Below, one piece after another: positions 4,860-56,270 of a stretch of DNA of 64,000 nucleotides; the first letter of the stretch is position 1; every line of letters begins with the position of its first letter. The position numbers and the translations under genes were made by a program. This DNA is from Macrostomum hystrix. Taxonomy: Eukaryota > Animalia > Platyhelminthes. The notes under the pieces were generated by a model. That model did not search any database, was not told the origin of the DNA, and saw nothing but the letters and a program-made list of their open reading frames with translations. Where the stretch lies: the NCBI GenBank assembly GCA_950097015.1, contig CATNEN010000008.1, forward strand, positions 3,906,001 through 3,970,000, in the 5' to 3' direction.

Positions 4860-5135
4860 ACACCTGCCCAAATTGGGTCAGATTTGCAGCCGACAGCACA
4901 GCCGCAGCTAATGCGCGGCGCATCTGATGGCTGCGTTCAGTCCATGGACTGGGGGGACGCCACACCCACCTTCAATTATCACAGCTAATGCTGGTACCCA
5001 TTTAACAGCGGGGTGAACTGAAGCAATTGAGAGTTGAGTGTCTTGCTAAAGGACACAAATTGTTCCAATGGAGTCGGGAATAGAATCCCCGACCTTAAAG
5101 TTGTGAGTCCGACGCCCTAACCACTAGGCTACAAC
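4860..5135 (-). mobile_element. tRNA-derived SINE, family A
   Basis: Minus-strand head GGTTGTAGCCTAGTGGTTAG (A box) with a B-box-like GATTCTATTCC, then a CORE/Meta-like TGTGTCCTTTAGCAAGACACTCAACTC...AAATGGGTACC segment and an (ATT)n tail. Near-identical copies occur elsewhere in the window. Confidence 0.8.
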
Positions 5136-5641
5136 CTTCTTTGTCTACATTGTCTACGTTGTCTAGGCTACAACCTACAACCTCGTCTTTCTTGTCAAGA
5201 ACGCGGTCCAACATAGTGTAATAACACAAACAAGCACAGTTAGTGCATAAAACAATAGACCTTCTGGCACCAGAAAACATATTATTCTTAGTCCTATTTT
5301 GCTCGTAGTGTCTAGCAGACTAATTTGATCAAAAAAAATTGCCTACCACGTTTCATGACCAGCGCACTACTTTACTAGCAGCCAATGCTGCAATACTTGT
5401 ACTTTACCCTATTCTATACGTCTTCTATATAACACAATCTACCGCCTGCAGGCACTAGAGCTAGTTAAGGCTCTGATTATAAATAACAGTATAAATAATA
5501 TTTTGCTTTACCTTGTAATAAGCGTTTTCTACTTGTTGCTATTGCCCGATGTTCAGTAGTACAGTTAGCGTATTTTGTACATTAAAAAAATAAAAAAACT
5601 GCTTTTATTTAAAATTCTTTCAAATAGCTCAGATTGGTTAA

Positions 5642-6835: not shown

Positions 6836-7514
<679 letters not shown>

Positions 7515-9394: not shown

Positions 9395-12300
9395 TTAAAA
9401 TGCGCCGAACAAACTCGCTGGTGGCAGTGCTGGCATCGGAGCTCTTTGCTGCTTGCTGTTGCCACCAGATGATGTCTTCGCTGCTGCAGCAGCCGCCGCC
9501 GCTGCCGCCGCAGCCGCAGCAGCCGCCGCCGCCGCAGCAGCAGCCTTGACATACGGACTGCGCGACCAGTCGCCGACAACGTTGGCAGGCGATATCGTCG
9601 GAGGCGAAACAATGTCCCCTTTCAGCTGCTGCTGCTGCTGCTGCAGCGACTGCTGATCTCGACTGTCGCCGCTGACACTGACATCTTCGACGCCGTCTAC
9701 CTCGTCTGCTTGGCCACCGGCCTCGTGCAATCGCATGTGCTTTCGCAGAGAGCTCGGGTGAGTGTAGGACTTGTCGCAGCCGCCAACTCGACAGTTGTAA
9801 GGCTTCTCGCTCAGGTGTACGTGCGTGTGCTTCTTGCGGTCCGAGCTGTTCGCAAATCGACGATCGCAGCCAGCGAACTCGCATCTGAACGGCTTCTCGC
9901 CTGCCAGTTGGTTTAGAGGTCTGGCTGAGTTGGGATCTCTGCTGCACTGATGACTGTGAGATTAGACTGAGAAAGATTGTGAGATTAGACTGAGAAAGAT
10001 TGTGAGATTAGACTGAGAAAGATTGTGAGATTAGACTGGAATAGACTGTGAGATTAGATTGGAATAGACTATGAGATTAGATTGGAATAGACTGTGAGAT
10101 TAGACTGAGAAAGACTGTGAGATTAGACTGGAATAGACTGTGAGATTAGACTGAGAAAGACTGTGAGATCAGATTGGAATAGACTGTGAGATCAGATTGG
10201 AATAGACTGTGAGATTAGATTGGAGTAGAATGTGAGATTAGATTGGAATAGACTGTGAGATTAGATTGGAATAGACTGTGAGATTAGATTGGAATAGACT
10301 GTGAGATTAGATTGGAATAGACTGTGAGATTAGATTGGAATAGAATATGAGATTAGACTCTGGGAAAGACTTTGAGATTAGACTGGAATAGACTGTGAGA
10401 TTAGATTGGAATAGACTGTGAGATTAGATTGGAATAGACTGTGAGATTAGATTGGAATAGACTGTGAGATTAGACTGGAATAGACTGTGAGATTAGATTG
10501 GAATAGACTGTGAGATTAGACTGAGAAAGATTGTGAGATTAGATTGGAATAGACTGTGAGATTAGATTGGAATAGACTGTGAGATTAGATTGGAGTAGAA
10601 TGTGAGATTAGATTGGAATAGAATATGAGATTAGACTCTGGGAAAGACTTTGAGATTAGACTGGAATAGACTGTGAGATTAGACTGGAATAGACTGTGAG
10701 ATTAGATTGGAATAGACTGTGAGATTAGACTTGGAAAGACTGTGAGATTAGACTCTCCGAAAGACTTTGAGATTAGACTGAATGATCACTGTGCAAGGTA
10801 GCAATGACCCACTGAAGCAATACTATTTAAATAGTATCAAAAAGAGTGATCTAGTATATTTTCGGATGGGGATTGTACCAAAACTAATTCCAATATTTCA
10901 TTAACTAGCAGGCCAAGACTTCCTAGACTCAAGAGAGTTATTGCAACCCTGGCAAAAACAGGGTCGGGTTGCGCAACAACTCAGAAGAGATTTTGAAAAC
11001 TCTATAGAGAAATCTGAGCGGAATGGAGTCTGCGATTGCGGTGTCTGTTGTGCAACTTCGTCAAATCCGGATTCTCGTCCTGATCTCCCCACCCCAACTG
11101 CCACTTTGGAGAGCAATTTTCACATTCTGCCCCTCCAAAGAGGTTCAGTTTACGACCCCAATATTAACTTTTGCTGCCTAACACGAGAAACCTTCAGATT
11201 TCAATATTAACCAAATATTAACTACGTGAACCACTTGTCACTTTTCTTAATTTTGTTAGTCTTATAACATCCTTTGATATTCTGACAAGACATGATCAAC
11301 ACAGTGGGTCATTGCTACCTTCCACAATGATCCTCCTTCAGTGGGTCATTGCTACCTTCCTCAATGATGCTTCAGTGGGTCATTGCTACCTTCCTCAATG
11401 ATCCTTCAGTGGGTCATTGCTACCTTCCTCAATGATGCTTCAGTGGGTCATTGCTACCTTCCTCAATGATCCTCCTTCAGTGGGTCATTGCTACCTTCCA
11501 CAATGATCCTCCTTCAGTGGGTCATTGCTACCTTCCTCAATGATCCTTCAGTGGGTCATTGCTACCTTCCTCAATGATGCTTTAGTGGGTCATTGCTACC
11601 TTCCTCAATGATGCTTCAGTGGGTCATTGCTACCTTCCTCAATGATCCTCCTTCAGTGGGTCATTGCTACCTTCCACAATGATCCTCCTTCAGTGGGTCA
11701 TTGCTACCTTCCTCAATGATCCTTCAGTGGGTCATTGCTACCTTCCTCAATGATGCTTTAGTGGGTCATTGCTACCTTCCTCAATGATGCTTTAGTGGGT
11801 CATTGCTACCTTCCTCAATGATGCTTCAATGGGTCATTGCTACCTTCCTCAATGATGCTTCAGTGGGTCATTGCTACCTTCCTCAATGATCCTTCAGTGG
11901 GTCATTGCTACCTTCCACAATGATCCTCCTTCAGTGGGTCATTGCTACCTTCCTCAATGATGCTTCAGTGGGTCATTGCTACCTTCCTCAATGATCCTTC
12001 AGTGGGTCATTGCTACCTTCCACAATGATCCTCCTTCAGTGGGTCATTGCTACCTTCCTCAATGATCCTTCAGTGGGTCATTGCTACCTTCCTCAATGAT
12101 GCTTTAGTGGGTCATTGCTACCTTCCTCAATGATGCTTCAGTGGGTCATTGCTACCTTCCTCAATGATGCTTCAATGGGTCATTGCTACCTTCCTCAATG
12201 ATGCTTCAGTGGGTCATTGCTACCTTCCTCAATGATCCTTCAGTGGGTCATTGCTACCTTCCACAATGATCCTCCTTCAGTGGGTCATTGCTACCTTCCT

Positions 12301-15300
12301 CAATGATGCTTCAGTGGGTCATTGCTACCTTCCTCAATGATCCTTCAGTGGGTCATTGCTACCTTCCTCAATGATGCTTTAGTGGGTCATTGCTACCTTC
12401 CTCAATGATGCTTTAGTGGGTCATTGCTACCTTCCTCAATGATGCTTCAATGGGTCATTGCTACCTTCCTCAATGATGCTTCAGTGGGTCATTGCTACCT
12501 TCCTCAATGATCCTTCAGTGGGTCATTGCTACCTTCCACAATGATCCTTCAGTGGGTCATTGCTACCTTCCACAATGATCCTTCAGTGGGTCATTGCTAC
12601 CTTGCACAGTGATGCTTCAGTGGGTCATTGCTACAGCGTAACCATAGGTAACTATAATGGTTTTCAGCCCGCCCATTTAGCAGAGCCAGGTCTCATTAAC
12701 TTGCAATCGATTTAAGCTAATCAGTAAGCACCTGCACAATCAACTGCCAGGAACACTATTAAAAGCTTTGTCACATTTTGCTTTTTCTCTACAGTGGACA
12801 AGAATACATATGACTGATTAGGAAATTTGTGAAGAAAACATTCTAACATCCTTCGCCGAAAAAAGCCAGTCAAGCATTTTTCTGTTCATAGAGAGGCAGA
12901 GAATTAAACAGCTGAGGCATCATTTAGACAATAGCGCTTTCATGCAATGCTTCTCCTGCAGCTACCTGTAACTCATTGCTTAATCGATACGCTCACAGCT
13001 ATGAATGCTGGTCTTAAATTCTTAATGACCACCTGCTAAGAAATGCAGCAGCACTGAGAGCCAATTAACGGGAGTCCTTGTTCACTGACAGCTCAAGCAT
13101 TGTGGCTGTTAAAACTGCTTTTTTAAGAAAAAAACACACTTTTCTTTTGAGTCACAGGCTAGGCTCATGTTTTGCTGCTTGTTTAACTGAAGCTACTGGC
13201 AATTGCTTCAGTCCCCAGAAACAGGAGGTCGGGAGTTCGGATCTGCCTGCAGGGAAAACTGTCTGTGTCCATTCAGCAAGACACTTAATTTCGGGCGCAG
13301 CCGCGGAGAGAAGGCTTGGGGGCTTGTCGTGTAATTTACGCCCTTTAGGGCCAACCTCCAAGGCACAGTGAGAGTGTACACTGCCTGACGATGAGAAAGT
13401 CAGGGCAGATGTACACACCTGTGTGAGCGTGTGCCTGCGTACAGTATCTGTGTGCGTGTGTGCTCAGGAATCAGCAAAATGGGCAGAATTGCCTCCTCGC
13501 TGGCTGCGGGTCTAGTGTCACCAAATGATGTGTAACTACCCACTGCCCTCCTGCAAATGTTACGAGTATTGTTATTATTATTATCATCAAGTGTGCACTA
13601 ATTCGCGTACTCAGAAAGATGGACTTTTAAACAATAATATTGGCACTTCTCACCTGTGTGCGTCCTCTTGTGAATCTTGAGATTCTCAGATCTGGCAAAC
13701 ACCTTGCCGCAGCCGGGGAACGGACAGGGGAACGGCTTCTCGCCGGTGTGAACCCGGATGTGATTCACCAGCTTGTACTTGGCCTTGAACGGCTTCAGGC
13801 TGCGCACGCATTCCAGCCAGTAGCAGGTGTGGTCCGTCAGCTCCGGACCTGGCGGTTCGTGGGTCGGTCGACTAACTGGTAATGTCTATGGCACTTCTAG
13901 ATTGTTCCATTATTCACTTTATTATCCTCCGATTCTTCTATGGGTTTCCCGAGATTCTTCTATGGGTTTCCCGAGATTCTTCTATGGGTTTCCCGAGATT
14001 CTTCTATGGATTTCCCGAGATTCTTCTATGGGTTTCCCGAGATTCTTCTATGGGTTTCCCGAGATTCTTCTATGGGTTTCCCGAGATTCTTCTATGGGTT
14101 TCCCGAGATTCTTCTATGGGTTTCCCGAGATTCTTCTATGGGTTTCCCGAGATTCTTCTATGGGTTTTCGTTTACCGTGATTCTTCATTCAGTGGGGTGT
14201 CGCCTCATTATTGAATAGCGCTCCTTTGTCCACTGATAGCGTCAGGGGTACTAGCTCAAATGGTAGAGCGCTCGCTTAGCATGCGAGAGGTACAGGGATC
14301 GATGCCCTGGTACTCCAGAATTATTTTCCTTTTTTTCTAAACGCAAATGTTTGGCGAATGAAATTATCGAGCAAGATCTCGTTATTTGAAATCAAAAAGC
14401 TGTTTTATAAAGTAGAACAATCAATGCTTAAACCTTTATAACTACAATTGAAAGAACTACTTTACTCGTATTATTATTTCAAGAAAAAATCTGATTTTCT
14501 GAACATATCGGTAATGATTAAGAATGCTATGGCCTCAATAACCCCAGGGACTACTAAATACCCACAGTGAATACATAAGCTACAAATAAAACCAAAGTAC
14601 AATTGTTTGTTATTTTACGAACTGAACTAAGCTTTTTCTACACATATCGGCTACCGGAAGAGCCTGACTTACCACCAACATGGTCCACAGTGATGTGAGC
14701 CACAATGTCGTGAATTGTGGCGAATAGGCGACCGCATGTTCTGCCGAATCGCTCCAGCCACAGGCAGCGATAATCACCACTGTGCAGATGAAGAAGCTGC
14801 TGCTGCTGCTGCTGCTGCGGGTAGTGATGCTGGTACTGGTGATGCTGATAATGTCCGTGATTCTGCGCAGGCGATTGCTTAGCAAAGCAGCCGGCCTGTT
14901 GCTGCAGGTAGGCCCGGTAGAGGGCGGGTCCGTATGCGGCTGACAGCTGGTTGAGGTGGCCGAAGCTGGCGGCAAAACTGCCGGGGTAATACTGATGGTG
15001 ATACTGCTGCTGCTGCTGCTGCTGCTGCTGGAGCTCGTGAGAATGCACCGCCTGGCAGGAGTGCAGCTCATGCGGCAGAGGCTGCTGCTGTTGCTGCTGC
15101 AGACGCTCTTCAGCAGTTGAATGATCCAAGACTGTCGTGAGCTGGTCAGAGGCGAGGACTGCCGAGAATTGCTGACTTGGCTGCTGCTGCTGCTGCTGCT
15201 GCTGCTGATTTCGCTGCATGAAGAAGTCTTTCCTTGGCGAATTATTTCCAGCGTTGAATTGCTGATGATGATGATGCTGCTGCTGCTGCTGCTGCTGCTG

Positions 15301-16098: not shown

Positions 16099-17112
16099 AG
16101 GTGTAATGATTGACAGACTGAATGACAAGGTGTAATGATTGACAGACTGAATGACAAGGTGTAATGATTGACAGACTGAATGACAAGGTGTAATGATTGA
16201 CAAGACTAAATAAAAGGTGTAATGATTGACAAGACTAAATAAAAAGTGTAATGACTGACAAGACTAAATAAAAAGTGTAATGACTGACAAGACTAAATAA
16301 AAAGTTGTAATGACTGACAGACTGAATGACAAGGTGTAATGATTGACAGACTGAATCACAAGGTGTAATGATTGACAGACTGAACGAAAAGGTGTAATGA
16401 TTGACAGACTGAATGAACACGTGTAATGACTGACAGACTAAATAAAAAGTGTAATGACTGACAGACTGAATCACAAGGTGTAATGATTGACAGACTGAAT
16501 GACAAGGTGTAATGATTGACAGACTAAATAAAAATGTTTAATGACCGACAGACTGAATGAACAGGTGTAATGATTGACAGACTGAATGACAAGGTGTAAT
16601 GATTGACAGACTGAATGACAAGGTGTAATGATTGACAAGACTAAATAAAAGGTGTAATGATTGACAAGACTAAATAAAAAGTGTAATGACTGACAAGACT
16701 AAATAAAAAGTGTAATGACTGACAAGACTAAATAAAAAGTGTAATGATTGACAAGACTAAATAAAAAGTGTAATGACTGACAAGACTAAATAAAAAGTGT
16801 AATGACTGACAAGACTAAATAAAAAGTGTAATGACTGACAAGACTAAATAAAAAGTGTAATGACTGACAAGACTAAATAAAAAGTGTAATGACTGACAAG
16901 ACTAAATAAAAAGTGTAATGACTGACAAGACTAAATAAAAAGTGTAATGATTGACAAGACTAAATAAAAAGTGTAATGATTGACAGACTAAATAAAAATG
17001 TTTAATGACCGACAGACTGAATGAACAGGTGTAATGATTGACAGACTGAATGAACAGGTGTAATGATTGACAGACTGAATGAACAGGTGTAATGATTGAT
17101 AGACTGAATGAG
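16099..17112. repeat. About 29-30-bp minisatellite between Zic and GCDH
   Basis: Two unit variants, gtgtaatgattgacagactgaatgacaag and gtgtaatgactgacaagactaaataaaaa, arranged in blocks. Confidence 0.9.
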
Positions 17113-18505: not shown

Positions 18506-25062
<6,557 letters not shown>

Positions 25063-26363: not shown

Positions 26364-29300
26364 TTACTTCGCTCCATCGTCAGCGTCTGACAGCGACGGC
26401 GTGGATATCGACATTGACGAGTCGTCATCATCATCACCATTGAAAGCTGACTCCTCAGCCTCCTGAATCTCCAGGCCGACAGCGTGGGCCCGAAATTGCA
26501 CCCGAGACTCGAGGCAGACGCCCCGGGCGGCCGACCGGCAGCTGTCGAGGCATCGCCGAGCGGACCGCTTGTCGCCCTGGCTGGCGCGCAATCGGGCCAA
26601 CTCCAGCCAGGCCCAGGCGGTCACGTGACGATCGCGCACTTTGCCAAGCCGGCCCTCTGTCACCTGCAGCAGGCACTGCTCCGCCTGTGTTTCTCGCTTC
26701 AATTCGGCCATGCAGGCGCCCTTCAACAGCAGCACCAAGGCCAGATCGTCGGCAGTTGTCGAGTCGGCAGCATCGGCGCCCGCAGCATCAACTAAGCGAT
26801 CGATTTCGTCTGAGGCGGCCTGAACGTCGGCCAAATGGCCGGCCAGGGATTCTGGATCTCGGCCAACTGCCGGCAGGCCGTTCCAAGCGTAGACCAACTC
26901 AAGGCCTGGCAGGATTAGCCTGACCCGGGGGTGTCTAGTTTGATTTTCGGCATTATTTCCTGCGCCATCTACTGTTGGATTCTGAGATTCTGTTGCATTT
27001 TCAGCATCGCATGCAGTCGAGGCTGCTGACAGTTTGCGCACGAAGCGTGCAGCCCTCAGCGCGGCCAATCGTTCAACAGGCAAATTGGGCACGCCGCCAC
27101 CGCAGCACAGAGTGTCGGAGACTTCCTTCATTAGCCGTGCCACTTCCGGGTCGTCAACTGCGCCGCTCTGATAAATAAAAGCCGCGCGCTGATAGAGAAC
27201 AGTGGCCCTACTCCAGCGGGTCTGGCCGGACAGCTCCAGGGCGCAGCAGGCAGCCTCGCGCCACCGGCCAGCGTAGGCCATGGCCCACATCAGCTCCCAG
27301 CGACACAGCTGGCGCAGCTGCGGCCACTCAGCCTGAACTGAGAGGCTGCGCTCGAACGACTCGGCGGCCTGGCGGGCGCGACCGCTCAGCAGGTGGTGTC
27401 GGCCCTGCATGCATGGGCGGTGAATAATAATAATATTTGCAGGAGGGCTGCGGGCTACGAGACATCATTTGGGGACAGTTGACCCGCAGACAGCGAGGAG
27501 GCAATTCTGTCTCCTGAGCACACGCTCACACAGGTGTGTGCATCGGCTCAAAGAGTCGATTCAAAGAGACCAGAAGGTGTGATGCAGCTAGTCAATTCAA
27601 AGAGACCAGAAGGTGTGATGCAGCTAGTCGATTCAAAGAGACCAGAAGGTGTGATGCAGCTAGTCGATTCAAAGAGACCAGAAGGTGTGATGCAGCTAGT
27701 CGATTCAAAGAGACCAGAAGGTGTGATGCAGCTAGTCAATTCAAAGAGACCAGAAGGTGTGATGCAGCTAGTCGATTCAAAGAGACCAGAAGGTGTGATG
27801 CAGCTAGTCGATTCAAAGAGACCAGAAGGTGTGATGCAGCTAGTCGATTCAAAGAGACCAGAAGGTGTGATGCAGCTAGTCAATTCAAAGAGACCAGAAG
27901 GTGTGATGCAGCTAGTCGATTCAAAGAGACCAGAAGGTGTGATGCAGCTAGTCGATTCAAAGAGACCAGAAGGTGTGATGCAGCTAGTCGATTCAAAGAG
28001 ACCAGAAGGTGTGATGCAGCTAGTCGATTCAAAGAGACCAGAAGGTGTGATGCAGCTAGTCGATTCAAAGAGACCAGAAGGTGTGATGCAGCTAGTCGAT
28101 TCAAAGAGACCAGAAGGTGTGATGCAGCTAGTCGATTCAAAGAGACCAGAAGGTGTGATGCAGCTAGTCGATTCAAAGAGACCAGAAGGTGTGATGCAGC
28201 TAGTCGATTCAAAGAGACCAGAAGGTGTGATGCAGCTAGTCGATTCAAAGAGACCAGAAGGTGTGATGCAGCTAGTCGATTCAAAGAGACCAGAAGGTGT
28301 GATGCAGCTAGTCGATTCAAAGAGACCAGAAGGTGTGATGCAGCTAGTCGATTCAAAGAGACCAGAAGGTGTGATGCAGCTAGTCGATTAAAAGAGATCG
28401 AAAATCAGAGGTCTGACCAGCTCAAAAGATCACCTCAAAGTAGAGAAACAGAGCTCCGTCAGGATACCGCTGTAGGCAGGGCTGGAGCAGTCTGTCAACA
28501 GCTTGGAGATCCACAGAGCCCAGCACGTGCGTAAACGAGGTGTGATAGGCCAGTAGCAGGACTCGAACCAGCGGGGCGCGCAGGCTGCCATCCATGCTGG
28601 CCGCGGTGCGGAGCTGGCGGAGGCCGCGTCTCCGGTTGCCGCTGAAGCCAACGAACTGCAGCAGACGGAGCAGGGCCGTTGGGAGCAGGCTCAGCAGCAG
28701 ATTGAAAGCGCCGTCGCCCAGTCTGTTACGAAGAGGCAAGCGTAGGTGTAAGGCAGGTAGGCAAGTGGACTTATAGCGGACTCGCGGGTACACACCTGGC
28801 TCCGCTCTCAAAGTGCATGCGCAGCTCCGGGCAGCCCCAGGCCCGCTTGCGCAGGAGGCGCCAGCACAGCCGGTAGGCCCGATAGCAGTCGCGTATTTTC
28901 AGGCCGCCTCGAACGAAGCCCATGAGGCTCTCGTCCTGGGCGAAGGTGAGTACAGCCTTCTCTAATAGCAGCTCGGCGTAGCACAGCTCGGCGTGACACT
29001 GCTCGTCGGTGAAGTCGCCTGGCTTCAGCAGGAGCGACGCCGCCGCAGCCAGGCCGTGACGCGGTCGACGGTGGCGCTGGCAGACACGCAGGGCTCGCTT
29101 GGTTGCGTCAACGGCTCGATGGATGTCGGCCTGCTCCAGGGTCATGGAGGCCTGCATGTAGCAGATTGTGGAGCAGCTCAGGCTGTGGTACATGGATGAC
29201 TCCGCTCTGTTGGATGGGATTATCGTTGTGGCTCAGCGTTAGTTTTGCGTTTTACGGGCTACTCGCAGGAGGCCAAGACAACGGGTCGTACCATAAAGCT

Positions 29301-31715: not shown

Positions 31716-32551
31716 AGGCTGCTTAAAACCAAGGACGACTGAAGTAGTGTCGTTTATAAGTTTCGTTTATCTTATTAAGTAATCCTTAATGCTCAAAACA
31801 TGATCAAGGGACAATGTCTTCAGTTGTCCCGTCTGGGGTCCAGGAATATTATCAGCTAGTACATTATTTGCCTTAAATCTAACTGTTTTAGAAAACATCG
31901 CAAGCTCGTAGATGTGATTTGCGATAAAAAGTTTTCCCCAACATTTGGGATAAAATGTATAAAGTCGATATCTACAACTAGTGCTGTGGAGAGATCTGAC
32001 TGACAGCCTAGAGACTCCCTTTTAGGGCTAATGCATGAATAAACATAAACAAACAATTTTGTTATGAACCCACATTTTTAGAACATAAAGCTTGTTATTG
32101 CTCACAACTTTAGTAACCTTTCTACGTAGTAACAAAGTGACGTGCTTTCCATAGTTTTTTTCACAGTCTATATTTATGTTTCTGTTTCGTTTTGAGTCAT
32201 TTAATCGCTTCCGATATTGGTTGACGGCTTTCGTAAACAGTTGCTATGCCAGTTGCCGGCACAGGCGAGGAAATATCGCTCGGAATTCGACAAAAATAAT
32301 TGGCTTGCGCGTCATTCTAAATACTGTCCTAGCAACAATTTTCATCTCACGACACATTGAGCTGCGCGGGACGTCAAAAGATTTTTTGTTTAAATCTTCA
32401 AAAATTATTTCGTCGCATCGATCAACCATATTTTAAGAGAATCCATATTCGGGTCTAAGTGTATATATGAGCCTGCACTGATACAAAAAATTGGCCGATA
32501 ACTGTTTTGATCCCGACCTTGCCAGATTTGCCAAGCCGAAGTAAAATAACA

Positions 32552-33021
32552 ATGATGCAACAAGCTGCTCTGATTGCTACCTGTCTCTGTAGCTTTGCCG
32601 TCCTGCTGCAGGTGAGTGGGCCTTTATTTGTTTAAATTAACCTAAACTTTGGACTTTCAAATAAAACAACTGTGCTCACCTGCAGCAGGCCCAGGGCAGA
32701 CGGCCGGAGCACGTCACAGCCAAGATTGAGTCCCACCTTGAGAACCGGCTCAAGCCCTGCTTCTATTACGGTCGCAATTGTCCGCCTGGCCTTGGCAACT
32801 ATGAGTCTATGGAGCACGACCTGCCAATCATGCAGGCTGGCCTCATAGCTTCTGGCATCCCAATGCCCTCCAGGTGCAACTGCGACCATTCGAGCGAGCG
32901 CTGCGTCCGACAGTGCTACTACTCTGTGACCAAGGCGATGGTGATGAAGTCCGCGGTGCCAGAAGAAGAAGACGACGGTGAGGGCGAGGGAGAAGACGAG
33001 AATGAGGACACTCGGCGATGA
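32552..33021 (+). CDS. Small secreted protein (about 131 aa) with six cysteines in the mature region and an acidic tail
   Basis: Exon 1 32552-32611 (MMQQAALIATCLCSFAVLLQ, donor gtgagt); phase-0 intron; exon 2 starts at 32686 or 32689 (NAGNAG acceptor): QAQG-RRPEHVTAKIESHLENRLKPCFYYGRNC...RCNCDHSSERCVRQCYYSV...PEEEDDGEGEGEDENEDTRR*. TATA-like TATATAT at 32462. Confidence 0.75.
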
Positions 33022-33191
33022 TGATTGCCTGAGAAAATGGCAATGAACTATTCAGCAAGACTGTCCCTGCGTAATGTCCAGTATTAATTAATTTTTAAGA
33101 CAGTGTTTCGCGAAAAACTTAAGAATCCCTCGGAATTGTTCAGCAAACAGTGAAACAGGAATATACGCAATGTTCGATGACAATATTTAAT

Positions 33192-33535
33192 GGGGTTGTA
33201 GCCTAGTATTTCCAAATTCACAACCATGGACTACTTTACTTTATATTAAATTTATATATACGACAACCCCGTGCTAACCATTTGAATGTCGGTCGGAGGT
33301 TCGACTCCCGACTCTACTTGAACGATTTGTGTCTTTTAGCAAGACGCTCAACTCATGATCGCTTCAGTTTAACCAGCTGCTAAATGGTGGTTAAACAGCA
33401 TTAGCTGGGTATTTGAGGGTGGTTGCGGCGTCTTCCAAGTCCATGGACTGGACAGAAGTTCTCAGCCTTCAGATGCGCCGTGCAATTGCTGCGGCTGTGC
33501 TGTCGGCTACACATAATTAGGCCAGGCAGGTGTAA
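33192..33535 (+). mobile_element. SINE family A copy with an interrupted head
   Basis: GGGGTTGTAGCCTAGT head, about 60 nt of inserted sequence, GGTTCGACTCC B box, then the family A body. Confidence 0.7.
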
Positions 33536-34087
33536 AAGTTATTTTTCGACAGACATACGAACTAGAACCAGATAGCATTCAATTGTTAAATTTCTCTGAA
33601 ACCCTGCCTTTCACAGAAAACATCAGCGTACACTGTCTAAGAATCTATGATTGCTTAAGGCAGACATGAATCATGTTTGCCATTTTAAGTTGTAGAACTA
33701 TTCCTAAGTACGAGTAGTATGTAGAGACTTGAGTGACATTTTCGTTGAAACGGAAGCATTTTTGCTTACATTTGACTCCCGTTGCAACTTAAATGGGATG
33801 GCCTCGTGCTGTAAAAAAGCAACGATTAACTCGATCCCAAACTAAAAGTTTCCCAGGCGCTTTAAATGATAATTAGCCATGCCCTTGAAGCCCCAAAGTA
33901 GAGTTCGTCGTTTCGAAAGCTATTTTAAAATAAGTGACCACAAATACTGCAGTTTGCGGAAGCAGTTCTCGAATAATTATAAAAACACAATCAATAATTG
34001 CACCTCAAGAGATAGACTTTGAAGCTAATGGCCCGAGAGCGTGCGGCAGAGTTGTCAGCAATCCGGATTGAACCGGTTCTGGATTGA

Positions 34088-34123
<36 letters not shown>

Positions 34124-34258
34124 GTCGGGAAACGCGTTATATATCTATCGAGCGATCGCCGTAGGTGCATGACGCATTCCTTTATTACGCATCTCATCTG
34201 CTGATTAGTGCGCTAACTTGTGTTTCTATGTGTATTGGTTTATCTAAATGTACCCATG

Positions 34259-34572
34259 AGGTTGTAGCCTAGTGCTTAGAGTGTCGTACTCACGACTTGA
34301 ACGTCGGAGTTTCGATTCGTGACTCCACTATAACAAATTGTGTCCTTTAGTAAGTCACCTTTCTCTGCATTGGTTCAGTTCACCCAGCTGCTGAATGGGT
34401 ACCAGCATTAGGTGGTGTAATTGAGGGTGGTTTTGGCGTCCCCCCAGTCCATGGACTGAACAGAAGTTCTCAGCCTTCAGATGCGCCGCGCAATAGCTGC
34501 GGCTATGCTGTCGGCTGCACATCTGGCCCAATTGGGGCAGGTGTAATAAATTGTTATTAATTATTAATTATT
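34259..34572 (+). mobile_element. SINE family A copy
   Basis: GGTTGTAGCCTAGTGCTTAG head, family A body, CAGGTGTAAT end followed by an AT-rich tail. Confidence 0.8.
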
Positions 34573-35440
34573 GCCCCATAGTATAAGTACAGAACAATGT
34601 TTCGACGGGACAAAAACGCGCAGTGGACAACAGCGTTGAATTATCAGCGCTAGTCAAAGCTTCATTGAGCATCGTTCCGGTGACAAGTATCTCACTTCGA
34701 AGATGACTTTCATACCATTCGATAAAACAAACAAATTCCTCTTCTTATAAGCCAGAAGAGTTTAAGCATTATCTTTCTGGATGTCCAATATTGTTAAAAT
34801 CCAATAATGGTTCGTTTAAATAGTTTTACGGATGATATAACTGAGAAATCAATCACTATTTAAAGAATCACAAAATTGAATGGTATTTTGAGAAGAATCA
34901 ATAAAAACGACAAATAAATTTGTCTTTCGAAAGAACATCCTTTAGCTTAAGCTTAGCTGTTATTTATTGATGAAAGAAAGTTAAATTAATGTATGATGAT
35001 GCACTAAATTTATTAGCAATTAGCTTTGCCAGTTAATAACAGTTCGATTGAGCTAGCTGTTACTGGATCAACATGCCCACACAGTACTAATTGCTCTATT
35101 CAAACAGGAAAAAACTTTTTTTATTCGAAGCAAACCGCCGGATGATGTTCCCTGCAGTTGACGCCGGCGAGTGAAAAATAATTTTCCGACAATCGACGGC
35201 GTCAGTAATTGGCGGCTTCACCACTGGATCCCCAGATCCGACCCTTCGACGATTGTCCTCAGTAACAAAAATAATTGAGGCAGAAAAGTTGAACTACGCG
35301 AGCTTGTTGAGCTGGTCTTAACTGGTCGCGGACTAATCTGTATAAATATATGCTACAGAGAGCAATTTTTTCTTCATCATTTTCAGGAATAGTCTTAGTC
35401 ATTTTTTATTCTAAAACAGACACTAGCAGCCCTCGCAACC

Positions 35441-36568
35441 ATGCGTACCGGAAGCATTGCCGTCGCTCTGCTGGTTCTCCTCTGCTCGTCTGTGCTGTTG
35501 GTGAGTTGACTAGTCGACTATGTGTTATTGCGGACTCGGGTGAGGATAATCGACTCAATAGTTTAACAGTCGGTTTGAGAGTTTGACGCTTTAGTCGTAG
35601 CAATTTTAAGAGTAAATCCGTTCTGTTCTGAAAAAAATATCGACGTCAACTCAAGGAATCCGTAGGAGGTAAATAAGGACGACTTAACTTCATGAATGAA
35701 AAAGATATATTTTTTCTTTTTGGTCACGTAGGTCGACGCAAGGAGCCTGCGCCTAAAGCGCGAGGACGACGAGGACAACAGATACGACGATAACGACAAC
35801 AATGACGAGGGCGACGACGAAGAGGGCAACGAGGATGAGGACGACAACAACGACGATGATGATGAAGAGGGCAACGAGGATGAAGATGACAACAACGACG
35901 ATGATGATGAAGAGGGCAACGAGGATGAGGATGACAACAACGACGATGATGATGAAGAGGGCAATGAGGACGAGGACGACAACAACGACGATGATGACGA
36001 AGAGGGCAACGAGGATGAGGATGACAACAACGACGATGATGATGAAGAGGGCAACGAGGATGAGGACGACAACAACGACGATGATGATGAAGAGGGCAAT
36101 GAGGACGAGGATGACAACAACGACGATGATGACGAAGAGGGCAACGAGGATGAGGATGACAACAACGACGATGATGACGAAGAGGGCAACGAGGATGAGG
36201 ATGACAACAACGACGATGATGACGAAGAGGGCAACGAGGATGAGGACGACAACAACGACGATGATGATGAAGAGGGCAATGAGGACGAGGACGACAACAA
36301 CGACGACGATGACGAAGAGGGCAATGAAGACGAGGATGACAACAACGACGATGATGATGAAGAGGGCAACGAAGATGAGGACGACAACAACGACGATGAT
36401 GACGAAGAGGGCAACGAGGATGAGGACGACAACAACGACGATGATGATGAAGAGGGCAATGAGGACGAGGACGACAACAACGACGATGATGATGAAGAGG
36501 GCAACGAGGGTGAGGATGACAACAACGACGAAGATGACAAGCGCCGTCGCAGGAAGCGTCACTTCTAA
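35441..36568 (+). CDS. Secreted polyanionic repeat protein (298 aa; 16 x EEGNEDEDDNNDDDD)
   Basis: Exon 1 35441-35500 (MRTGSIAVALLVLLCSSVLL, donor gtgagt); exon 2 35732-36568: VDARSLRLKR-EDDEDNRYDD...(45-bp unit x16)...KRRRRKRHF*. This frame is absent from the ORF track because its ATG lies in exon 1. TATAAATA at 35341. Confidence 0.85.
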
Positions 36569-38176
36569 GCTGGGGGAATGTTTAGAATGTCTGCTGATTT
36601 AGAAAAGACACTCCTTCCCATTTATGTGCTGAATTTACTATTGTGCCACTACTCTTAACGCGATACAAACAGTAGTATGAGAACGGCAGAAAATATCGAT
36701 CTCTGTTGATTCGCATCGCTGCTGCCTGTGGTTATTTAACACCGATCAAGAGGCTCGATGATAAAATAAATCAGCATGACGCTGTAGCTAGATCTAACTC
36801 GAGAATGCATCAAAATTTTAGTCTGTCTTCGTTTTTTTGCTTAAAAATTCAGCTGGAACAAATTTATTGAATTCACAAAAACTAGCTCATAGCTATAGCG
36901 TGATCATCATAATCAAGTGATCGCAGGCTGCATGAAAATCAATCAAAATACTACGAGCTATTTTAATGAAGCAAGTATCAGGAGTCGACTGTGTTGAATG
37001 GACGATGTACTATCAATGCGTGATAACGTATTTATTGTACATTTATTCGAACTTCAAGTCACACATGCGGTTAACGAGGGCTCTCAGGTTGATGTCGACA
37101 GTTGCATCGTTAGTTACCCTTGGAGTAGGGAAGAAATATTAATTCGTATTCCAAGAAAGTTAAAATATCCCTGACGCTCAATGGATAGAGAATTAAACAT
37201 TTTACTCTAATATCCGACAATATTTAGAATTTCATACTAAGTAAAAGGAACAGAAAAGTGCAGCGTCAAGTGTTGGGAACGGATCCCTTCGACAAATTTA
37301 TTCAGAGATCAGAAAAACATCATCAATCTCACTCAGTTTCATGACTTTGTGCCTCTGCTTAAGAGTTACAAGTCTGAATAAAACGGCTGTCAGAAAACTG
37401 AATTTAAATGCTAAAGCTCGAAAGAAAAACACTCATGAGGTGATACCGGCCCAACTATGTCTATACTCGTATGCATGCTTCTTACCTTTCGTATAAAGAG
37501 TTTTTGCTTTCACATAAACTTTCCACGCATTGGCTTACGTTTTTATTTATTCTTCTCAAAATACCATTCAATTTTGTGATTCTTTAAATAGTGATTGATT
37601 TCTCAGTTATATCATCCGTAAAACCATTTAAACGAACCGTTATTGGATTTTAACAATATTTGACCCAGGAAATTTCCCCTTTATCACCGCACTAATCGTT
37701 GCACCATGCCCTATTTATCAAATTTCGTTAGCAACGCTTGAACTACAAAACTTTTCTGGCGCCTCTAGCTCAGGAGAGCAGTCCTTATTCCAGTCTCCAG
37801 TTTTTATTGGAGACTGGAGACTGGAGACTGGGATCAGCTTGCTCAGTGCTGATCGGAACGGCGCGGCGAACGAGTGGAATCGTTTAAAAACTCGAGTAGG
37901 ACATTGCAGCCATTTTCAGTGCAGCTTCCGATCATCATCGTTTCACTGCGCCAAATTAATGAGGCTTTGTGAGCCCTCCCCATTCTGTAGATTGCAGCAA
38001 TATCCCATCGCGCCGGATTTCCACCATTCCGATAGAATTTTTAAACGACAAGACGACTATAATTGCTTTTAATGGTAGTGAAAATTTCGTATAAATTCGA
38101 AAACTTTTCAACGACTAGAAATGCGCCTTTTAATTTTCTTCTTTTCACTTGCGAAGCTAACAGGCTGGTATCAAAC

Positions 38177-40034
38177 ATGCGCCTCTTGCTGGTTGCAGTT
38201 GGAATCGTGCTTTGCATCTCGCTGATGCACACACAGGTAAGTCATCGTTTTTCTGTGCTATCTCAATCTGTCCAAAATAAAAAGCTTCATAGGAAAATAT
38301 TTATTAACGTTTCAGTCGGAAGGTAGAGCAATTAAGCGAGGATACGGTAGTATCTCCATGGAATTCGACAAAAAGGATGATGACTCCGGATATGAGGATG
38401 AAGATAACTCAGGCGACAACAACGATGAAGACGACATTTTTGACAGGAGGAAGAAGGAAGATGACGAGGACAATGAGGACGAGGAGAACGAGGATGATGA
38501 CGAGAACTACGACCGCAAGAAGAGGGAGGACGATGAGGAAGATGATGACGAGGAGAACGAGGATGATGACGAGAACTACGACCGCAAGAAGAGGGAGGAC
38601 GATGAGGAGGATGGTGATGACGAGGAGAACGAGGACGACGACGAGAACTACGACCGCAAGAAGAGGGAGGACGATGAGGAAGATGATGACGAGGAGAACG
38701 AGGATGATGACGAGAACTACGACCGCAAGAAGAGGGAGGACGATGAGGAGGATGGTGATGACGAGGAGAACGAGGACGACGACGAGAACTACGACCGCAA
38801 GAAGAGGGAGGACGATGAGGAGGATGGTGATGACGAGGAGAACGAGGACGACGACGAGAACTACGACCGCAAGAAGAGGGAGGACGATGAAGATGATGAG
38901 GACGAGGAGAACGAGGATGACGACGAGAACTACGACCGCAAAAAGAGGAGGGAGGACGATGAGGAAGATGATGATGAAGAGAACGAGGACGACGACGAGA
39001 ACTACGACCGCAAGAAGAGGCAGGATGATGAGGAAGATGATGACGAGGAGAACGAGGACGACGACGAGAACTACGACCGCAAGAAGAGGGAGGACGATGA
39101 AGATGATGATGACGAGGAGAACGAGGATGATGACGAGAACTACGACCGCAAGAAGAGGGAGGATGATGAGGAAGATGATGACGAGGAGAACGAGGACGAC
39201 GACGAGAACTACGACCGCAAGAAGAGGGAGGACGATGAAGATGATGAGGACGAGGAGAACGAGGATGACGACGAGAACTACGACCGCAAAAAGAGGAGGG
39301 AGGACGATGAGGAAGATGATGATGAGGAGAACGAGGACGACGACGAGAACTACGACCGCAAGAAGAGGGAGGACGATGAAGAGGATGATGACGAGGAGAA
39401 CGAGGACGACGACGAGAACTACGACCGCAAGAAGAGGGAGGATGATGAGGAAGATGATGACGAGGAGAACGAGGACGACGACGAGAACTACGACCGCAAG
39501 AAGAGGGAGGACGATGAAGAGGATGAGGACGAGGAGAACGAGGATGACGACGAGAACTACGACCGCAAGAAGAGGGAGGACGATGAAGAGGATGAGGACG
39601 AGGAGAACGAGGATGACGACGAGAACTACGACCGCAAGAAGAGGGAGGACGATGAGGAAGATGATGATGAAGAGAACGAGGACGACGACGAGAACTACGA
39701 CCGCAAGAAGAGGGAGGACGATGAAGATGATGAGGACGAGGAGAACGAGGACGACGACGAGAACTACGACCGCAAGAAGAGGGAGGATGATGAAGATGAT
39801 GATGACGAGGAGAACGAGGATGACGACGAGAACTACGACCGCAAGAAGAGGGAGGATGATGAGGAAGATGATGACGAGGAGAACGAGGACGACGACGAGA
39901 ACTACGACCGCAAGAAGAGGGAGGACGATGAAGAGGATGATGACGAGGAGAACGAGGATGATGACGAGAACTACGACCGCAAGAAGAGGGAGGACGATGA
40001 TGATGATGAGGATGCTGAAGAGAGAAGTCGCTAA
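38177..40034 (+). CDS. Secreted prohormone-like polyprotein (592 aa) with 22 acidic units each ending ENYD-RKKR
   Basis: Exon 1 38177-38236 (MRLLLVAVGIVLCISLMHTQ, donor gtaagt); exon 2 from 38316 (tttcag/TCG): SEG-RAIKR-GYGSISMEFDKK..., in frame with the 558-aa ORF 38358-40034. Codon variation among the repeats is largely synonymous or D/E-conservative. TATAAAT at 38090. Confidence 0.9.
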
Positions 40035-42174: not shown

Positions 42175-42243
42175 TAAGTAAGCAAGTAAGCAAGTATGTA
42201 AGCAAGTAAGTAAGTATGTAAGTAAGTAAGTAAGTAAGTAAGC

Positions 42244-42298
<55 letters not shown>

Positions 42299-42355
42299 CA
42301 AGTAAGTAAGCAAGTAAGTAAGCAAGTAAGTAAGTAAGTAAGTAAGCAAGCAAGC

Positions 42356-42410
<55 letters not shown>

Positions 42411-42467
42411 CAAGCAAGTAAGTAAGTAAGTAAGTAAGTAAGCAAGTAAGTAAGTAAGTAAGTAAGC

Positions 42468-42498
<31 letters not shown>

Positions 42499-42507
42499 CA
42501 AGTAAGC

Positions 42508-42574
<67 letters not shown>

Positions 42575-42575
42575 C

Positions 42576-42665
<90 letters not shown>
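42175..42665. repeat. (TAAG)n/(CAAG) microsatellite
   Basis: Direct reading. Confidence 0.97.
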
Positions 42666-42668
<3 letters not shown>

Positions 42669-43184
42669 AGGGTAAATAGCTGTTAGAACTCCGGAAGTGA
42701 CATTACGACACCCTGCATGGCTTTCACCCAGACCCCATCATCCAAAAGGCCGCTGACAGGAATTGAAATTTGACTAAAGCAAGAGTAAAAAAAGTTCATA
42801 GTAAGTTCCAGCCAGTTTGCCATTCTGCATTGAGGATTTTTAGCCATGGGAATTTTCCATCGTCATCGCTGCATGCGAAGCTCTGGGATTAATAGCTCTT
42901 TTCCTGCAGTTAATGATGTGCTCTTCCCTAATCCCACACGATTATCCACTCGCACGGTTGCCTCAGCACGTGTGTCGCCATAATTTCTCCCATTCCACTA
43001 CCAAATCCTCACCAAGCTTTTTGGTCCATTTCATGAGATTTCAATGCTGCACAGACAGCTGGCAAGAATTGCAGAAGTACCTCAACTCCTCAGCGGATGC
43101 CACTTTTTGCACTAAACATTTCAAATCCCACTCCTCAGTCTACCCGTCGCTTTTTCTCCTCTCTCTTTTCTACTCTCCTTCCTC

Positions 43185-43735
43185 TCCTTCCCTTCCTCAT
43201 CTACCTCACTCTCCCTGATCCCCCTCCTTCCTCTCCTTCCCTTCCTCATCTACCTCACTCTCCCTGATCCCCCTCCTTCCTCTCCTTCCCTTCCTCATCT
43301 ACCTCACTCTCCCTGATCCCCCTCCTTCCTCTCCTCCTCTTCCTCATCTACCTCACTCTCCCTGATCCCCCTCCTTCCTCTCCTTCCCTTCCTCATCTAC
43401 CTCACTCTCCCTGATCCCCCCTCCCTCCTCTCCTCCCCTTCCTCATCTACCTCACTCTCCCTGATCCCCCTCCTTCCTCTCCTCGCCTTCCTCATCTACC
43501 TCACTCTCCCTGATCCCCCCTCCCTCCTCTCCTCCCCTTCCTCATCTACCTCACTCTCCCTGATCCCCCTCCTTCCTCTCCTCGCCTTCCTCATCTACCT
43601 CACTCTCCCTGATCCCCCCTCCCTCCTCTCCTCCCCTTCCTCATCTACCTCATTCTCCCTGATCCCCCCTCCTTCCTCTCCTCCCCTTCCTCATCTACCT
43701 CATTCTCCCTGATCCCCTCTCCCCCTCCTTCCCTT
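43185..43735. repeat. About 49-bp pyrimidine-rich minisatellite
   Basis: Unit ctccctgatccccctccttcctctccttcccttcctcatctacctcact. Confidence 0.92.
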
Positions 43736-44404
43736 GCTCTTCTACATCATTCTCCCAGATCCCCTCTCTCGCAGGGATAATTAGGGGAATGAAATTATTT
43801 TGGCCAGACCCTCACAAAAGCTTATTCTCGGCTACTGTCTGGGTGGGCCGCACTGGCAGTGGAAAGCATGAAACTGGGAGACAAGCGTGCGAAATAAATT
43901 TCGCATTCCGCGGACAGCGCTGTGGTCCCTCGCGACTGAATCACCAGCCCCCCCTTAGGAAATAATGAAGATGCTTCTAAGCAGTGTTTATCAGCCACAA
44001 CTGGGGAACAGATTCTCCCTCGGCCTCCACTGTTTATCCCGCATAGGGGAGACAGTGGGATAAGCGCAACAGCGCGACGGGATTTGCCCATCTTCGCTAA
44101 CTTAAGGAGAGACCGCGTCTGTCATTCTCCTCACTCGGAGCCTCTTGTGTTCCCGTTTCAGACTCGTTCCAATCCCCAATTTTCTGTCCCAGAAAAGTCC
44201 CAAATCTGGTTGCCCAGCCCGGGCGCACTTTCATTTCGGAACGAAAGCACAGCTAGCTGGGTGGAAAAGTGATGGCAGCTCTGCCTATTTGGTCTTCTCG
44301 GGAGGGCACGGCTTGCGCATCTCCTAGGAGAAAAGTGATGACAGGGGAGCACTAGAGAGAAGGCTAGAAAAAATGGGGAAACGCTGCTGTGAGATCGAGA
44401 CGCG

Positions 44405-46797: not shown

Positions 46798-49376
46798 ATG
46801 CTGCTACCCCTGGCCGCAGCCCTTCTGCTGCAGCTGCCGGCCAGCAGTCGGCAGTGCCAATTCCGCAACGGCTACATCTACGAGTGCGGTCACAACGACC
46901 TCAGCCGCACGACCCAACTGCGAGGACCACTCCCCGACCACGTGAAAGTGCTGGACATCTCCTATAACAGATTCGAGGAGTTGAATCCGGCCTATCTGGC
47001 CGAGCAGTTCCCTGGAGTCCAGCAGCTGCTGGCGGTGGATAACAGGATTGCTAGCCTGACCCATACGACTTCGAGCACCTCCTGGCCCCAGTTGAAGCTG
47101 CTCAAACTGAGCCGGAACCGGCTGGAGTCCATTGTTAGAGACGAGCTGGCATTCGGCACGGGGTTAGAAACGCTGCACCTGGATGGAAATCGGCTGCAAA
47201 GTTTGAGCAGGGGCTGCTTTAGCAAGTGCCACAATTTGAGTCTGCTCAATTTGGAAAACAATAATCTGGACTATCTGCACTCGGACTATTTTTGGGGTAA
47301 GGAAAAAACTTGCGTGGATAATTTTAAAAGATTGAAAACACCTGCTCTGCCATAACGATTCAACTTAGAAAGGTATAGGCTCATCAAAACCACTAAAAAT
47401 GACCAAACTGAACTCACGCAGGCCTTTGGAGTCTGCAAACGCTGCGCCTCAGCCACAACCAGCTCACCGGCCTCTCATCGGACGCACTCGGCCATCTGCA
47501 CAGCCTGCAACTCCTGGACCTCAGTCACAACCGAATCAAATCACTGTCCGGATCTGCCCTGAGCGGCCTGCCAAGTCTGTCCGGCCTCAGCCTAGCTGGC
47601 AATCAGCTCGCCGAGCTGCCCAAGGACGCGCTGCGATCGGCGCCATCTTTGACGCATCTGGATGTGTCAGGGAATCATCTGACGGACCTCTACGCTGGTA
47701 CGGTGAGCGGCCTCGCCAACCTTGAGAGTCTACTCCTGAACGGCTCGGCTGAGCTGCGCCTAATCGATGCCGGGGCTTTTGACCAGCTGCCGCGGCTGCG
47801 TCTACTGGACGTCTCTAATAGCCGCCTGTTGGTCTACATCAGCGCGAGCGCCTTTCACGGCTGCCAGTCGCTGACCGAACTTCGCCTGTCCGGCTGTCCA
47901 CTGGCGATCGCTCCTCTGAACGACTGGCGCCAGGCCTCACCAAAGCTTGAAAAGATCGACGTCGGAGATGCTCCGATTGCCGACGCATCGTTTGCTGGCG
48001 TCGCCGTGATGGACTTGTTCCCGGCGGAGATTGTCCTGTCAGAGGGACACCGGCTCAAGCTTCCGTGTCGCTCTTATCCGGAGGGCCGAGCTCGATGGCT
48101 TCTGCCGGAAAGCCTGCGAGGAAGCGATCAAGACGTCGGTGGCGGGGAGCAGCGCCGTCACCTGCGGCATCACGTGACTATAACGTCGAGTCAAGAACTG
48201 CTGCTGCACGACGTGTTTGATCGTCTAAGTGGCGTATATGCCTGCGTAGCAACTGGCGTTGACAACGGAACCGCTCATGCTACCAAGTCCCAAAGACGCG
48301 AGGTCGCTATCACCGTGAAGCGGATGGAGAGTCGGCTGCTGCTGCTGAAGGTTGGAGTAAAGTCGGGACAGTCCGAAGTCTAGTCAACTGCGGATTTCAG
48401 ATATTTAACATTTAACTGTCTTCTTTAGAATTCTTTTAATTCGGTCCCGAAACGGACACTAATTTTAACTCACCAAATTCTTTACCATTCAGCAAAATGA
48501 TGGAAAGTTTTCTACGCATACTGCAGATCACTGAGAACAGCATTGTGGTGACATGGCAGCACTTGACAAACCCGGATGATTTTGTGCTGATGTACCGGCC
48601 GTGGGGCGACGCCGACTCCAGCTATCACCGAGTGCGCCTTCGGGCCTACATGAAGCGCTACTCGATCAGCAGCCTGCGACCAGGGTGCGCCTACCAGCTG
48701 TGCCTGGCCCTCATAACCTACACAGACTATCAGCACCTGCACTGCTTGCTGGTCACAACGCGCACCGGCAGGGAATCCGATCGAGACGCTTTCATGTTTA
48801 ACGGGCGCATTGTGCTGGTGCTGGTCATTGGGATCGCCGTGTCCGTTGGCGTCCTAGTGGCCTGTCTGGTTGCGTGCAGCTTGTCACGCGACAAAGAAAC
48901 GGACGCTTGGAGTCAGGTGATAATTTAACATTTTATGCCAACTAAAAGCGTTTAGTCTCTGCGAGTTGTAAATGTCTCGAATAATTAGGGCTAAGAAGCA
49001 ACCTTCGATGCAGGCTTCTCTAGCTGGTTCTCGTTGGTCGGACAGTCAGCCGATGACGTTTGAAAATCGCGCCGCAGCGGACGACTACTTCGGCGATGCT
49101 GGCGACGCTCTGGACAGCGAGGTCGACGATGATGATGAGGACGATCGAGGTCAAGGAAACAATGCCAGAGTTCACCAAACCGTTGAAACTTCTGTGATAG
49201 ACGGCATAGAACTTCGACTGCAGGCGAATGAAGGCGACGGTCCTCATGGCGAGGACGAATTCGGCGAGCGTCTGGTGACCAGCGTTCTGCAGCACCAGCG
49301 ATTGACGGAGCCGGCTGGACATGGCACTGTCAGCAGCAACAGCGAAGCCCGACAGAGCAGCGACGAAGGATTGTAG
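46798..49376 (+). CDS. LRR-Ig-FN3 single-pass transmembrane protein (LRRN/NLRR-like)
   Basis: Exons (+): 46798-47296, 47422 to about 48350/48356 (donor ambiguous), 48527-48916, 49014-49376. Signal peptide; multiple LxxLxLSxNxL repeats; LRRN-like IDAGAFDQLPRLRLLDVSNSRLLVYISASAF; Ig domain (LPCRS...W...GVYACVA); FN3 (ITENSIVVTW...YSISSLRPGCAYQLCL); TM segment IVLVLVIGIAVSVGVLVACLVA; acidic tail. Confidence 0.85.
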
Positions 49377-56034: not shown

Positions 56035-56270
56035 TATTGGGCCAGCCCGACACAAAAACCGCAGCTATTTAGCGGCGCTTCTGAAAGCTGTGTACGGCTC
56101 TTTAGTCCATGGACTGGAGCACGCAACACCCAACCGGCCTTAAATTACCTCACCTAATGCTGGCACCAAAAGCTCAGAGTTAAGGTGTCTTGCTTTCATA
56201 AATTAACCTGGTGTAGACAGGAATCGAATCCGATCATTCGGAGCAGAAAGGAAGCGAACTTGCAAGCGTA
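56035..56270 (-). mobile_element. Degenerate family-A-like SINE
   Basis: Contains agtccatggactgg, ctaatgctggcacc and agagttaaggtgtcttgct, with a tRNA-like head (ggattcgattcc) on the minus strand. Confidence 0.55.

Follow-up and report, generated by a model that had tools for sequence, protein, structure and literature searches.

The locus considered here raises two questions: whether three neighboring genes of the flatworm Macrostomum hystrix that look as if they encode acidic secreted proteins are real and belong together, and what such proteins could be used for. The three, called genes 1, 2, and 3 in their order along the forward strand, lie at positions 32552–40034 of a 64-kb window (contig 8, positions 3,906,001–3,970,000), which is the whole stretch of DNA that was analyzed and to which coordinates refer unless another contig is named. 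A prediction made from the letters alone had described a tandem cluster of identical exon architecture, and had proposed either a diverged paralogous family or a coregulated secretory module. The reading that we favor, and to which we give about an even chance as a whole, is that these are three real secreted-protein genes restricted to Macrostomum, and that the products of genes 2 and 3 are convertase-processed polyanions that would act electrostatically in gland secretions.

Three genes with a two-exon structure

Each gene consists of a TATA box, a first exon that encodes 20 signal-peptide-like codons, a phase-0 intron with GT-AG borders, and a single body exon, all on the forward strand. 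In gene 1, the TATA box (GTATATAT, 32461–32468) stands 91 nucleotides (nt) 5′ of the ATG, exon 1 (32552–32611) ends at GTGAGT, the intron (32612–32685) is 74 nt long with an alternative AG 3 nt downstream, and exon 2 (32686–33021) encodes 111 residues comprising a six-cysteine three-helix domain, an acidic tail, and TRR before the stop. In gene 2, the TATA box (GTATAAAT, 35340–35347) precedes the ATG by 101 nt, exon 1 (35441–35500) is followed by an intron of 231 nt (35501–35731), and exon 2 (35732–36568) encodes 278 residues, with an RLKR site, a polyanion of 259 residues, and KRRRRKRHF before the stop. Gene 3 has the same TATA octamer as gene 2 (38089–38096), 88 nt 5′ of the ATG, then exon 1 (38177–38236), an intron of 79 nt (38237–38315), and an exon 2 (38316–40034) of 572 codons that is made up of a 47-residue head, 22 repeated units, and a 14-residue tail.

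The original prediction of three same-strand, two-exon models with first exons of 60 nt is confirmed by the sequence, with exon 1 starting at 32552, 35441, and 38177, and its phase-0 introns are confirmed as well. All three first exons have a hydrophobic core; the donors of genes 1, 2, and 3 are CAG/GTGAGT, TTG/GTGAGT, and CAG/GTAAGT, the introns end in CAG, TAG, and CAG, and the body exons are in frame, whereas unspliced read-through meets a stop at codon 28, 23, and 50, respectively. Across the junction into exon 2 the proteins read A-Q-G/RR, V-D-A/RSLRLKR, and S-E-G/RAIKR, with small residues at −3 and −1 followed by Arg in every case, and the C-termini are TRR, KRRRRKRHF, and RSR; the basic residues after the predicted signal cleavage, the acidic body or tail, and the basic C-terminus that had been noted therefore hold in the exon 2 translations. 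A TATA-like box upstream of each ATG was likewise found, at a measured distance of 88 to 101 nt. The octamer GTATAWAT occurs eight times on the two strands of the window, three of these on the forward strand 91, 101, and 88 nt before the three ATGs, and the other five sites have no signal-peptide-like open reading frame (ORF) downstream. An AATAAA or ATTAAA lies 122–224 nt past each stop. The same combination of features occurring three times over is far beyond chance, and on this evidence all three appear to be real genes for predicted secreted, acidic proteins. That an ORF-based view had missed them is explained by the two-exon layout, in which the first exon stands apart.

Two caveats attach to the start codons. 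Gene 1 has an in-frame second ATG one codon in, from which exon 1 would be 57 nt, and gene 3 has an out-of-frame ATG at 38121, near the expected transcription start. The latter belongs to a duplication: the start of gene 3 (ATGCGCCT, then C or T, then TT; 38177–38187) is repeated 56 nt upstream at 38121–38131, and this upstream copy, about 32 nt past the TATA box and out of frame, would open a 34-codon hydrophobic ORF if transcribed.

Genes 2 and 3 are constrained coding arrays

The array of gene 2 has 16 units of 15 amino acids (35819–36537), in which the variable sites at first, second, and third codon positions number 0, 1, and 7. The array of gene 3 has 22 units of 23–24 amino acids (38457–39989), each ending in ENYD-RKKR; the R-K-K-R is present at the end of all 22, twice as RKKRR, and the head that precedes the array carries KR, KK, and RRKK sites. 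Among the seventeen 23-residue units of gene 3, variable sites by codon position number 2, 0, and 10. When the final 16 codons are compared across the 22 units, five sites vary, every one by a synonymous third-position transition, and there is no nonsynonymous change at all; amino acid changes are limited to the first eight residues of the units, where Asp and Glu replace each other and where one N, one Q, and an inserted Gly occur. Because the variation is nearly all third-position and synonymous, both arrays are coding and constrained, which distinguishes them from neutral minisatellites. What has been maintained is the reading frame, together with the RKKR and the C-terminal half of the gene 3 unit, and we propose that genes 2 and 3 expanded as coding units of 45 and 69 nt, respectively, were duplicated in tandem under purifying selection.

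The same variation bears on the alternative that the first exons are spurious, in which case the arrays would be either noncoding minisatellites or parts of unspliced nuclear or cytosolic acidic proteins, with RKKR as a nuclear localization motif. RKKR does resemble such a motif, exon 2 of gene 3 has an in-frame ATG of its own at 38358, and the window is full of minisatellites. Third-position variation nevertheless marks the arrays as coding, the gene 1 model is matched by an annotated Macrostomum lignano protein, and in all three genes a TATA box, a first ATG, a hydrophobic 20-mer, a consensus donor, and an in-frame acceptor occur together, as they do at no other TATA site of the window. We consider spurious first exons very improbable.

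Searches with the two polyanion genes returned no relatives. Searches of the M. hystrix genome itself (an assembly of 220,453,370 bases in 42 contigs) were made exon by exon with each spliced model, and those with genes 2 and 3 gave no paralogue, only low-complexity noise. In Pfam, none of the three body exons, that of gene 1 included, matched a family at E up to 1. A word-indexed homology search with gene 3, both whole and with residues 1–70, found no homologue, a negative that is weakened by composition bias and length limits, and the ESM Atlas gave no usable match to gene 3; no homologue of the gene 3 precursor was found among 5.8 billion proteins, and we found no described counterpart. Genes 2 and 3 are, as far as these comparisons indicate, orphan polyanion genes of the Macrostomum lineage.

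Gene 1 and a predicted six-cysteine family of Macrostomum

The M. hystrix genome contains at least 23 exon-level matches to gene 1, some of which stand in tandem arrays, and the gene 1 body exon is 75% identical (E 6e-48) to an M. lignano hypothetical protein. In an alignment of nine paralogues and the M. lignano orthologue, the cysteines C25, C32, C64, C73, and C77 are invariant and C66 is nearly so, being kept in at least 90% of the aligned sequences. The orthologue has exactly 20 residues ahead of the position aligned to the start of exon 2, which supports the exon 1 model of gene 1. A profile search of 1.84 billion representatives with the gene 1 family returned just ten clusters, all from M. 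lignano. The AlphaFold2 model of gene 1 is a three-helix domain with a predicted local distance difference test score of 83; with this model, Foldseek against the PDB gave no match at E≤0.001 and a wide VIA-align search gave only generic helical bundles (best Z 4.6), and the ESM Atlas gave no usable match to gene 1. The names WAP, saposin, and FZ, which are attached automatically to family members in UniProt, were rejected as an identity for the family, because they conflict with one another and have no Pfam match at E up to 1.

Gene 1 is thus best described as a member of a Macrostomum-specific family of predicted secreted proteins with six cysteines and three helices, represented in M. lignano by hypothetical proteins such as PAA46481.1, with which it shares the six cysteines and the two-exon layout. 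Within this family the acidic tail of GEGEGE type and the basic end are confined to gene 1 and its orthologue and are absent from the gene 1 paralogues; gene 1 acquired a conserved acidic tail within its family.

Family members elsewhere in the genome are packed in tight tandem arrays that repeat about every 356 bp, at contig 34, 3420535–3422171, and at contig 35, 1340398–1341319. Two other paralogues, 3 kb apart on contig 38 (extracts L004:1474-1779 and L006:1474-1776), end in KR-LFG-KK-G and KR-FIG-RR-N, possible C-terminal mini-peptides with an amidation-type Gly; some members of the gene 1 family may thus serve as peptide precursors as well.

Relationships among the three genes

The proposal that the trio are diverged paralogues of one ancestral secreted acidic-protein gene, whose acidic part expanded from gene 1 to gene 3, draws on their common strand, their placement within 7.5 kb, their 60-nt first exons and equal intron phase, and the succession of an acidic region and a basic end in all three. 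Against this, the body of gene 1 lies in another family, with many members that lack acidic tails, and six-frame searches of the genome with each body exon gave no cross-matches among genes 1, 2, and 3. Comparison of promoters, first exons, introns, and 3′ flanks by blastn-short returned only words at chance level; the promoters have nothing in common beyond the TATA box, with k-mers at the null level. Alignments among the three signal peptides gave z from −0.9 to 1.9, the last of these for genes 2 and 3.

The exon architecture itself turns out to be widely distributed. A signal-peptide exon followed by a phase-0 intron is likewise present in eight unlinked gene 1 paralogues, whose first exons measure 42, 69, 42, 42, 48, 66, 45, and 60 nt, and three of the eight have a TATA box 93–102 nt before the ATG. 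Because the unlinked paralogues share them, the exon layout and the TATA spacing are generic, and the identical architecture does not serve as the mark of a family; on this small empirical distribution the shared 60 nt is a coincidence of about 1 in 20. A TATA promoter, a short leader, a first exon that carries most of the signal peptide, a phase-0 intron, and one body exon make up the usual design of M. hystrix small secreted-protein genes. Descent of all three genes from one ancestor is, in our judgment, unlikely.

Genes 2 and 3 present a different case. With a polyacidic ORF defined as one that contains at least 50% D+E over 50 residues, we detected no example in 130 kb of control DNA, taken as a single 10-kb flank from each of 13 other gene 1 family sites, nor in the remaining 56 kb of the window. 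Given this rarity, a chance adjacency of genes 2 and 3, which are 1.6 kb apart, is improbable, and their placement is nonrandom, a point that also counts in favor of common descent. The two share a short RxKx-EDDEDN junction (z 3.9, p about 0.0025 against a naive shuffle), the significance of which is overstated because that shuffle destroys charge blocks. The repeat units themselves are no more alike than composition-preserving shuffles (p 0.10–0.58), and an alignment of the units as EE-N-ED-D-N-D, striking by eye, was discarded since it is no better than that of shuffled units. The adjacency fits either a local common origin that repeat turnover has erased or selection for co-location, and we put a shared origin of genes 2 and 3 at somewhat less than even. 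The original prediction therefore stands as far as the tandem, same-strand cluster is nonrandom, and is not supported as far as the trio was to be one family, gene 1 being unrelated to the others.

Predicted processing of the gene 2 and gene 3 products

The gene structures and the coding constraint are read from the DNA directly; cleavage and sulfation, like the cell type and function considered below, we infer from the precursor sequences. R-K-K-R is a minimal furin-type motif, and the genome has P_proprotein domain matches above the cut-off, indicative of proprotein convertases, at at least six loci. In the scheme that we propose, furin-type convertases would cut the gene 2 product at RLKR and at the C-terminal poly-basic run (KRRRRKR), the two sites that bound the polyanion, and would free a chain of about 30 kDa; once trimmed of basic residues this would be a single 259-residue product with a net charge of −186. 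The gene 3 product would be cut at each RKKR, and trimming by carboxypeptidase would leave 22 peptides of 19–20 residues and 2335–2406 Da, with a net charge of −15 or −16. Ten of the 22 predicted peptides are identical, and Asp and Glu make up about 84% of the residues. Every unit contains one Tyr, in the acidic setting DDDENYD, and this Tyr may be sulfated; a tyrosylprotein sulfotransferase homologue is present in three exons on contig 9, 104495–105702 (E 4e-20 to human TPST2 over 70 residues).

The gene 3 precursor resembles the multicopy precursors processed by furin or other proprotein convertases, such as pro-TRH, FMRFamide, yeast alpha-factor, apidaecin, and Baramicin, in having a predicted signal peptide followed by near-identical units bounded by R-X-K-R, and in that purifying selection acts on the cleavage motif and on a portion of the peptide. 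It differs from these precursors in the extreme Asp/Glu content of its peptides and in having no hydrophobic or amidated element and no homology to them, and its cleavage is a prediction. The units end in Tyr-Asp before RKKR, with no amidation Gly before the basic site. A neuropeptide precursor was considered for gene 3 and rejected: the amidation Gly is missing, and there is no Pfam or database match to a neuropeptide.

Possible roles of the acidic products

If they are released in this way, the products would most likely act by charge on polycationic partners or on divalent cations, which they would bind, condense, or displace either in gland granules or outside the animal. Granins and serglycin-type polyanions offer a parallel, as acidic secretory products that carry dibasic sites and serve to condense calcium and cationic cargo inside granules, though granins are far less acidic and nonrepetitive, serglycin owes its charge to glycosaminoglycan chains, and neither is homologous to genes 2 and 3. 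Several considerations count against such processed, charge-driven polyanions. The RKKR could be something other than a cleavage site, and gene conversion among repeats can mimic or exaggerate constraint. The absence of homologues is weak evidence, in that biased composition defeats HMMER scoring and the search was length-limited. Moreover, the Asn, Tyr, and D-versus-E positions that are kept in the C-terminal half of the gene 3 unit suggest a sequence-specific role and not one of bulk charge.

This last point leads to the alternative that the products are sequence-specific bioactive or defensive secretions, namely metal-dependent anionic antimicrobial, seminal-fluid, or pheromone-type peptides. 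Multicopy precursors are typical of peptides that are required in large molar quantities, and despite synonymous change the gene 3 unit is invariant as protein in its C-terminal half. Anionic antimicrobial peptides composed only of Asp are enhanced by Zn(II) (PMC8267837); these surfactant-associated peptides are likewise short, secreted, and almost entirely acidic, but are heptamers derived from a different type of precursor. Among the secreted genes of Macrostomum, those related to reproduction evolve rapidly and in many cases are orphans (PMC10468722). The supplements of the M. lignano seminal-fluid screen contained no matching peptide motifs. As gene 3 has no amidation signal, no amphipathic or hydrophobic element, and no homology to a known family, we regard such a role as doubtful, though by no means negligible.

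A structural role in controlling mineral formation, as for the Asp-rich shell proteins of mollusks, would also be in keeping with a predicted signal peptide and an extreme content of Asp, Glu, and Asn. Gene 2 in particular shares with Aspein, Asprich, and phosphophoryn a signal peptide (predicted in gene 2) and a long low-complexity polyanion, but it mixes Asp, Glu, and Asn, its polyanion is flanked by convertase sites, it has no homology to those proteins, and its host is not known to mineralize. Cleavage into 19-mers at regularly placed furin sites is not normal for matrix proteins, and Macrostomum is not known to have a calcified structure. We consider such a role very improbable.

The duo-gland adhesive organ offers a further candidate function, in which the gene 3 peptides, or the gene 2 polyanion, would be its negatively charged releasing factor. 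Wunderer et al. (2019) predict a releasing molecule that is small, secreted, and of negative charge, and report that attachment is blocked by heparin or by the pentasaccharide Fondaparinux, and release by cationic peptides (PMC6410801); the factor had not yet been identified in the literature of 2021–2022. The bond to be outcompeted would be that of the cohesive protein ap1, which is rich in lysine and arginine, and 22 heparin-like, possibly Tyr-sulfated peptides would detach the animal by electrostatic competition with this cationic protein. In size and charge class the predicted gene 3 products agree with this, as each transcript would specify 22 copies of a 2.35-kDa peptide with a charge of −16 that is small, predicted to be secreted, and strongly negative. 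On the other side, the releasing vesicles are reported to hold a periodic acid-Schiff-positive polysaccharide and to have a low protein density (PMC6410801), and no M. lignano orthologue of gene 3 was found. We think it quite improbable that these genes supply the releasing factor and that their products detach the animal by such competition.

Genomic setting

The neighbors of the cluster are ordinary conserved genes. A TTC39-like gene (26367–27410) lies upstream on the reverse strand and a gene for an LRR protein (46798–48380) downstream on the forward strand, with RIMBP-like, SMC, ZIC, and acyl-CoA dehydrogenase genes further out, so that conserved genes of housekeeping and neural kinds surround the cluster. 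At 1581–4364 the window holds ORFs of a channel gene of the DEG/ENaC type.

Micro- and minisatellites in long arrays, whose periods range from 4 to 253 nt, are unusually abundant in the window, at 854–1419, 6836–7514, 9952–12634, 16099–17109, 19985–21297, 22138–22986, 27554–28397, 42175–42665, and 43175–43764, among others, and many of them give rise to spurious ORFs that are long and occupy several frames. Another repeat, dispersed and about 220–320 nt in length, by eye like a short interspersed nuclear element and with 74–83% identity among copies, is present twice between genes 1 and 2 (33291–33514 and 34243–34571, strand not assigned) and again at 4828–5137, 19057–19372, and 56047–56167.

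Gene 2 is enclosed, together with its promoter and 3′ end, by an inverted repeat of 127 nt (left arm 34783–34909, right arm 37538–37664; no strand assigned), whose arms are 97% identical and sharply ended and delimit a unit of 2.9 kb. A multicopy transposon was ruled out as its source, as the genome holds just these two copies. The inverted repeat could permit inversion of the gene or mark a recent rearrangement.

Significance

The cluster as such is of lesser importance, its exon layout being general to the small secreted-protein genes of M. hystrix; the same layout means that ORF-based views miss such genes. The 22 copies of an almost purely acidic 19-mer in gene 3 are an unusual use of the prohormone-type polyprotein design. 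Should the polyanions serve flatworm de-adhesion, the less likely case, they would be of interest for reversible glues. The gene 3 precursor is a simple, testable candidate for a way in which soft-bodied animals could produce small polyanions that require no glycosaminoglycan synthesis, and such polyanions could pack or neutralize highly cationic secreted peptides.

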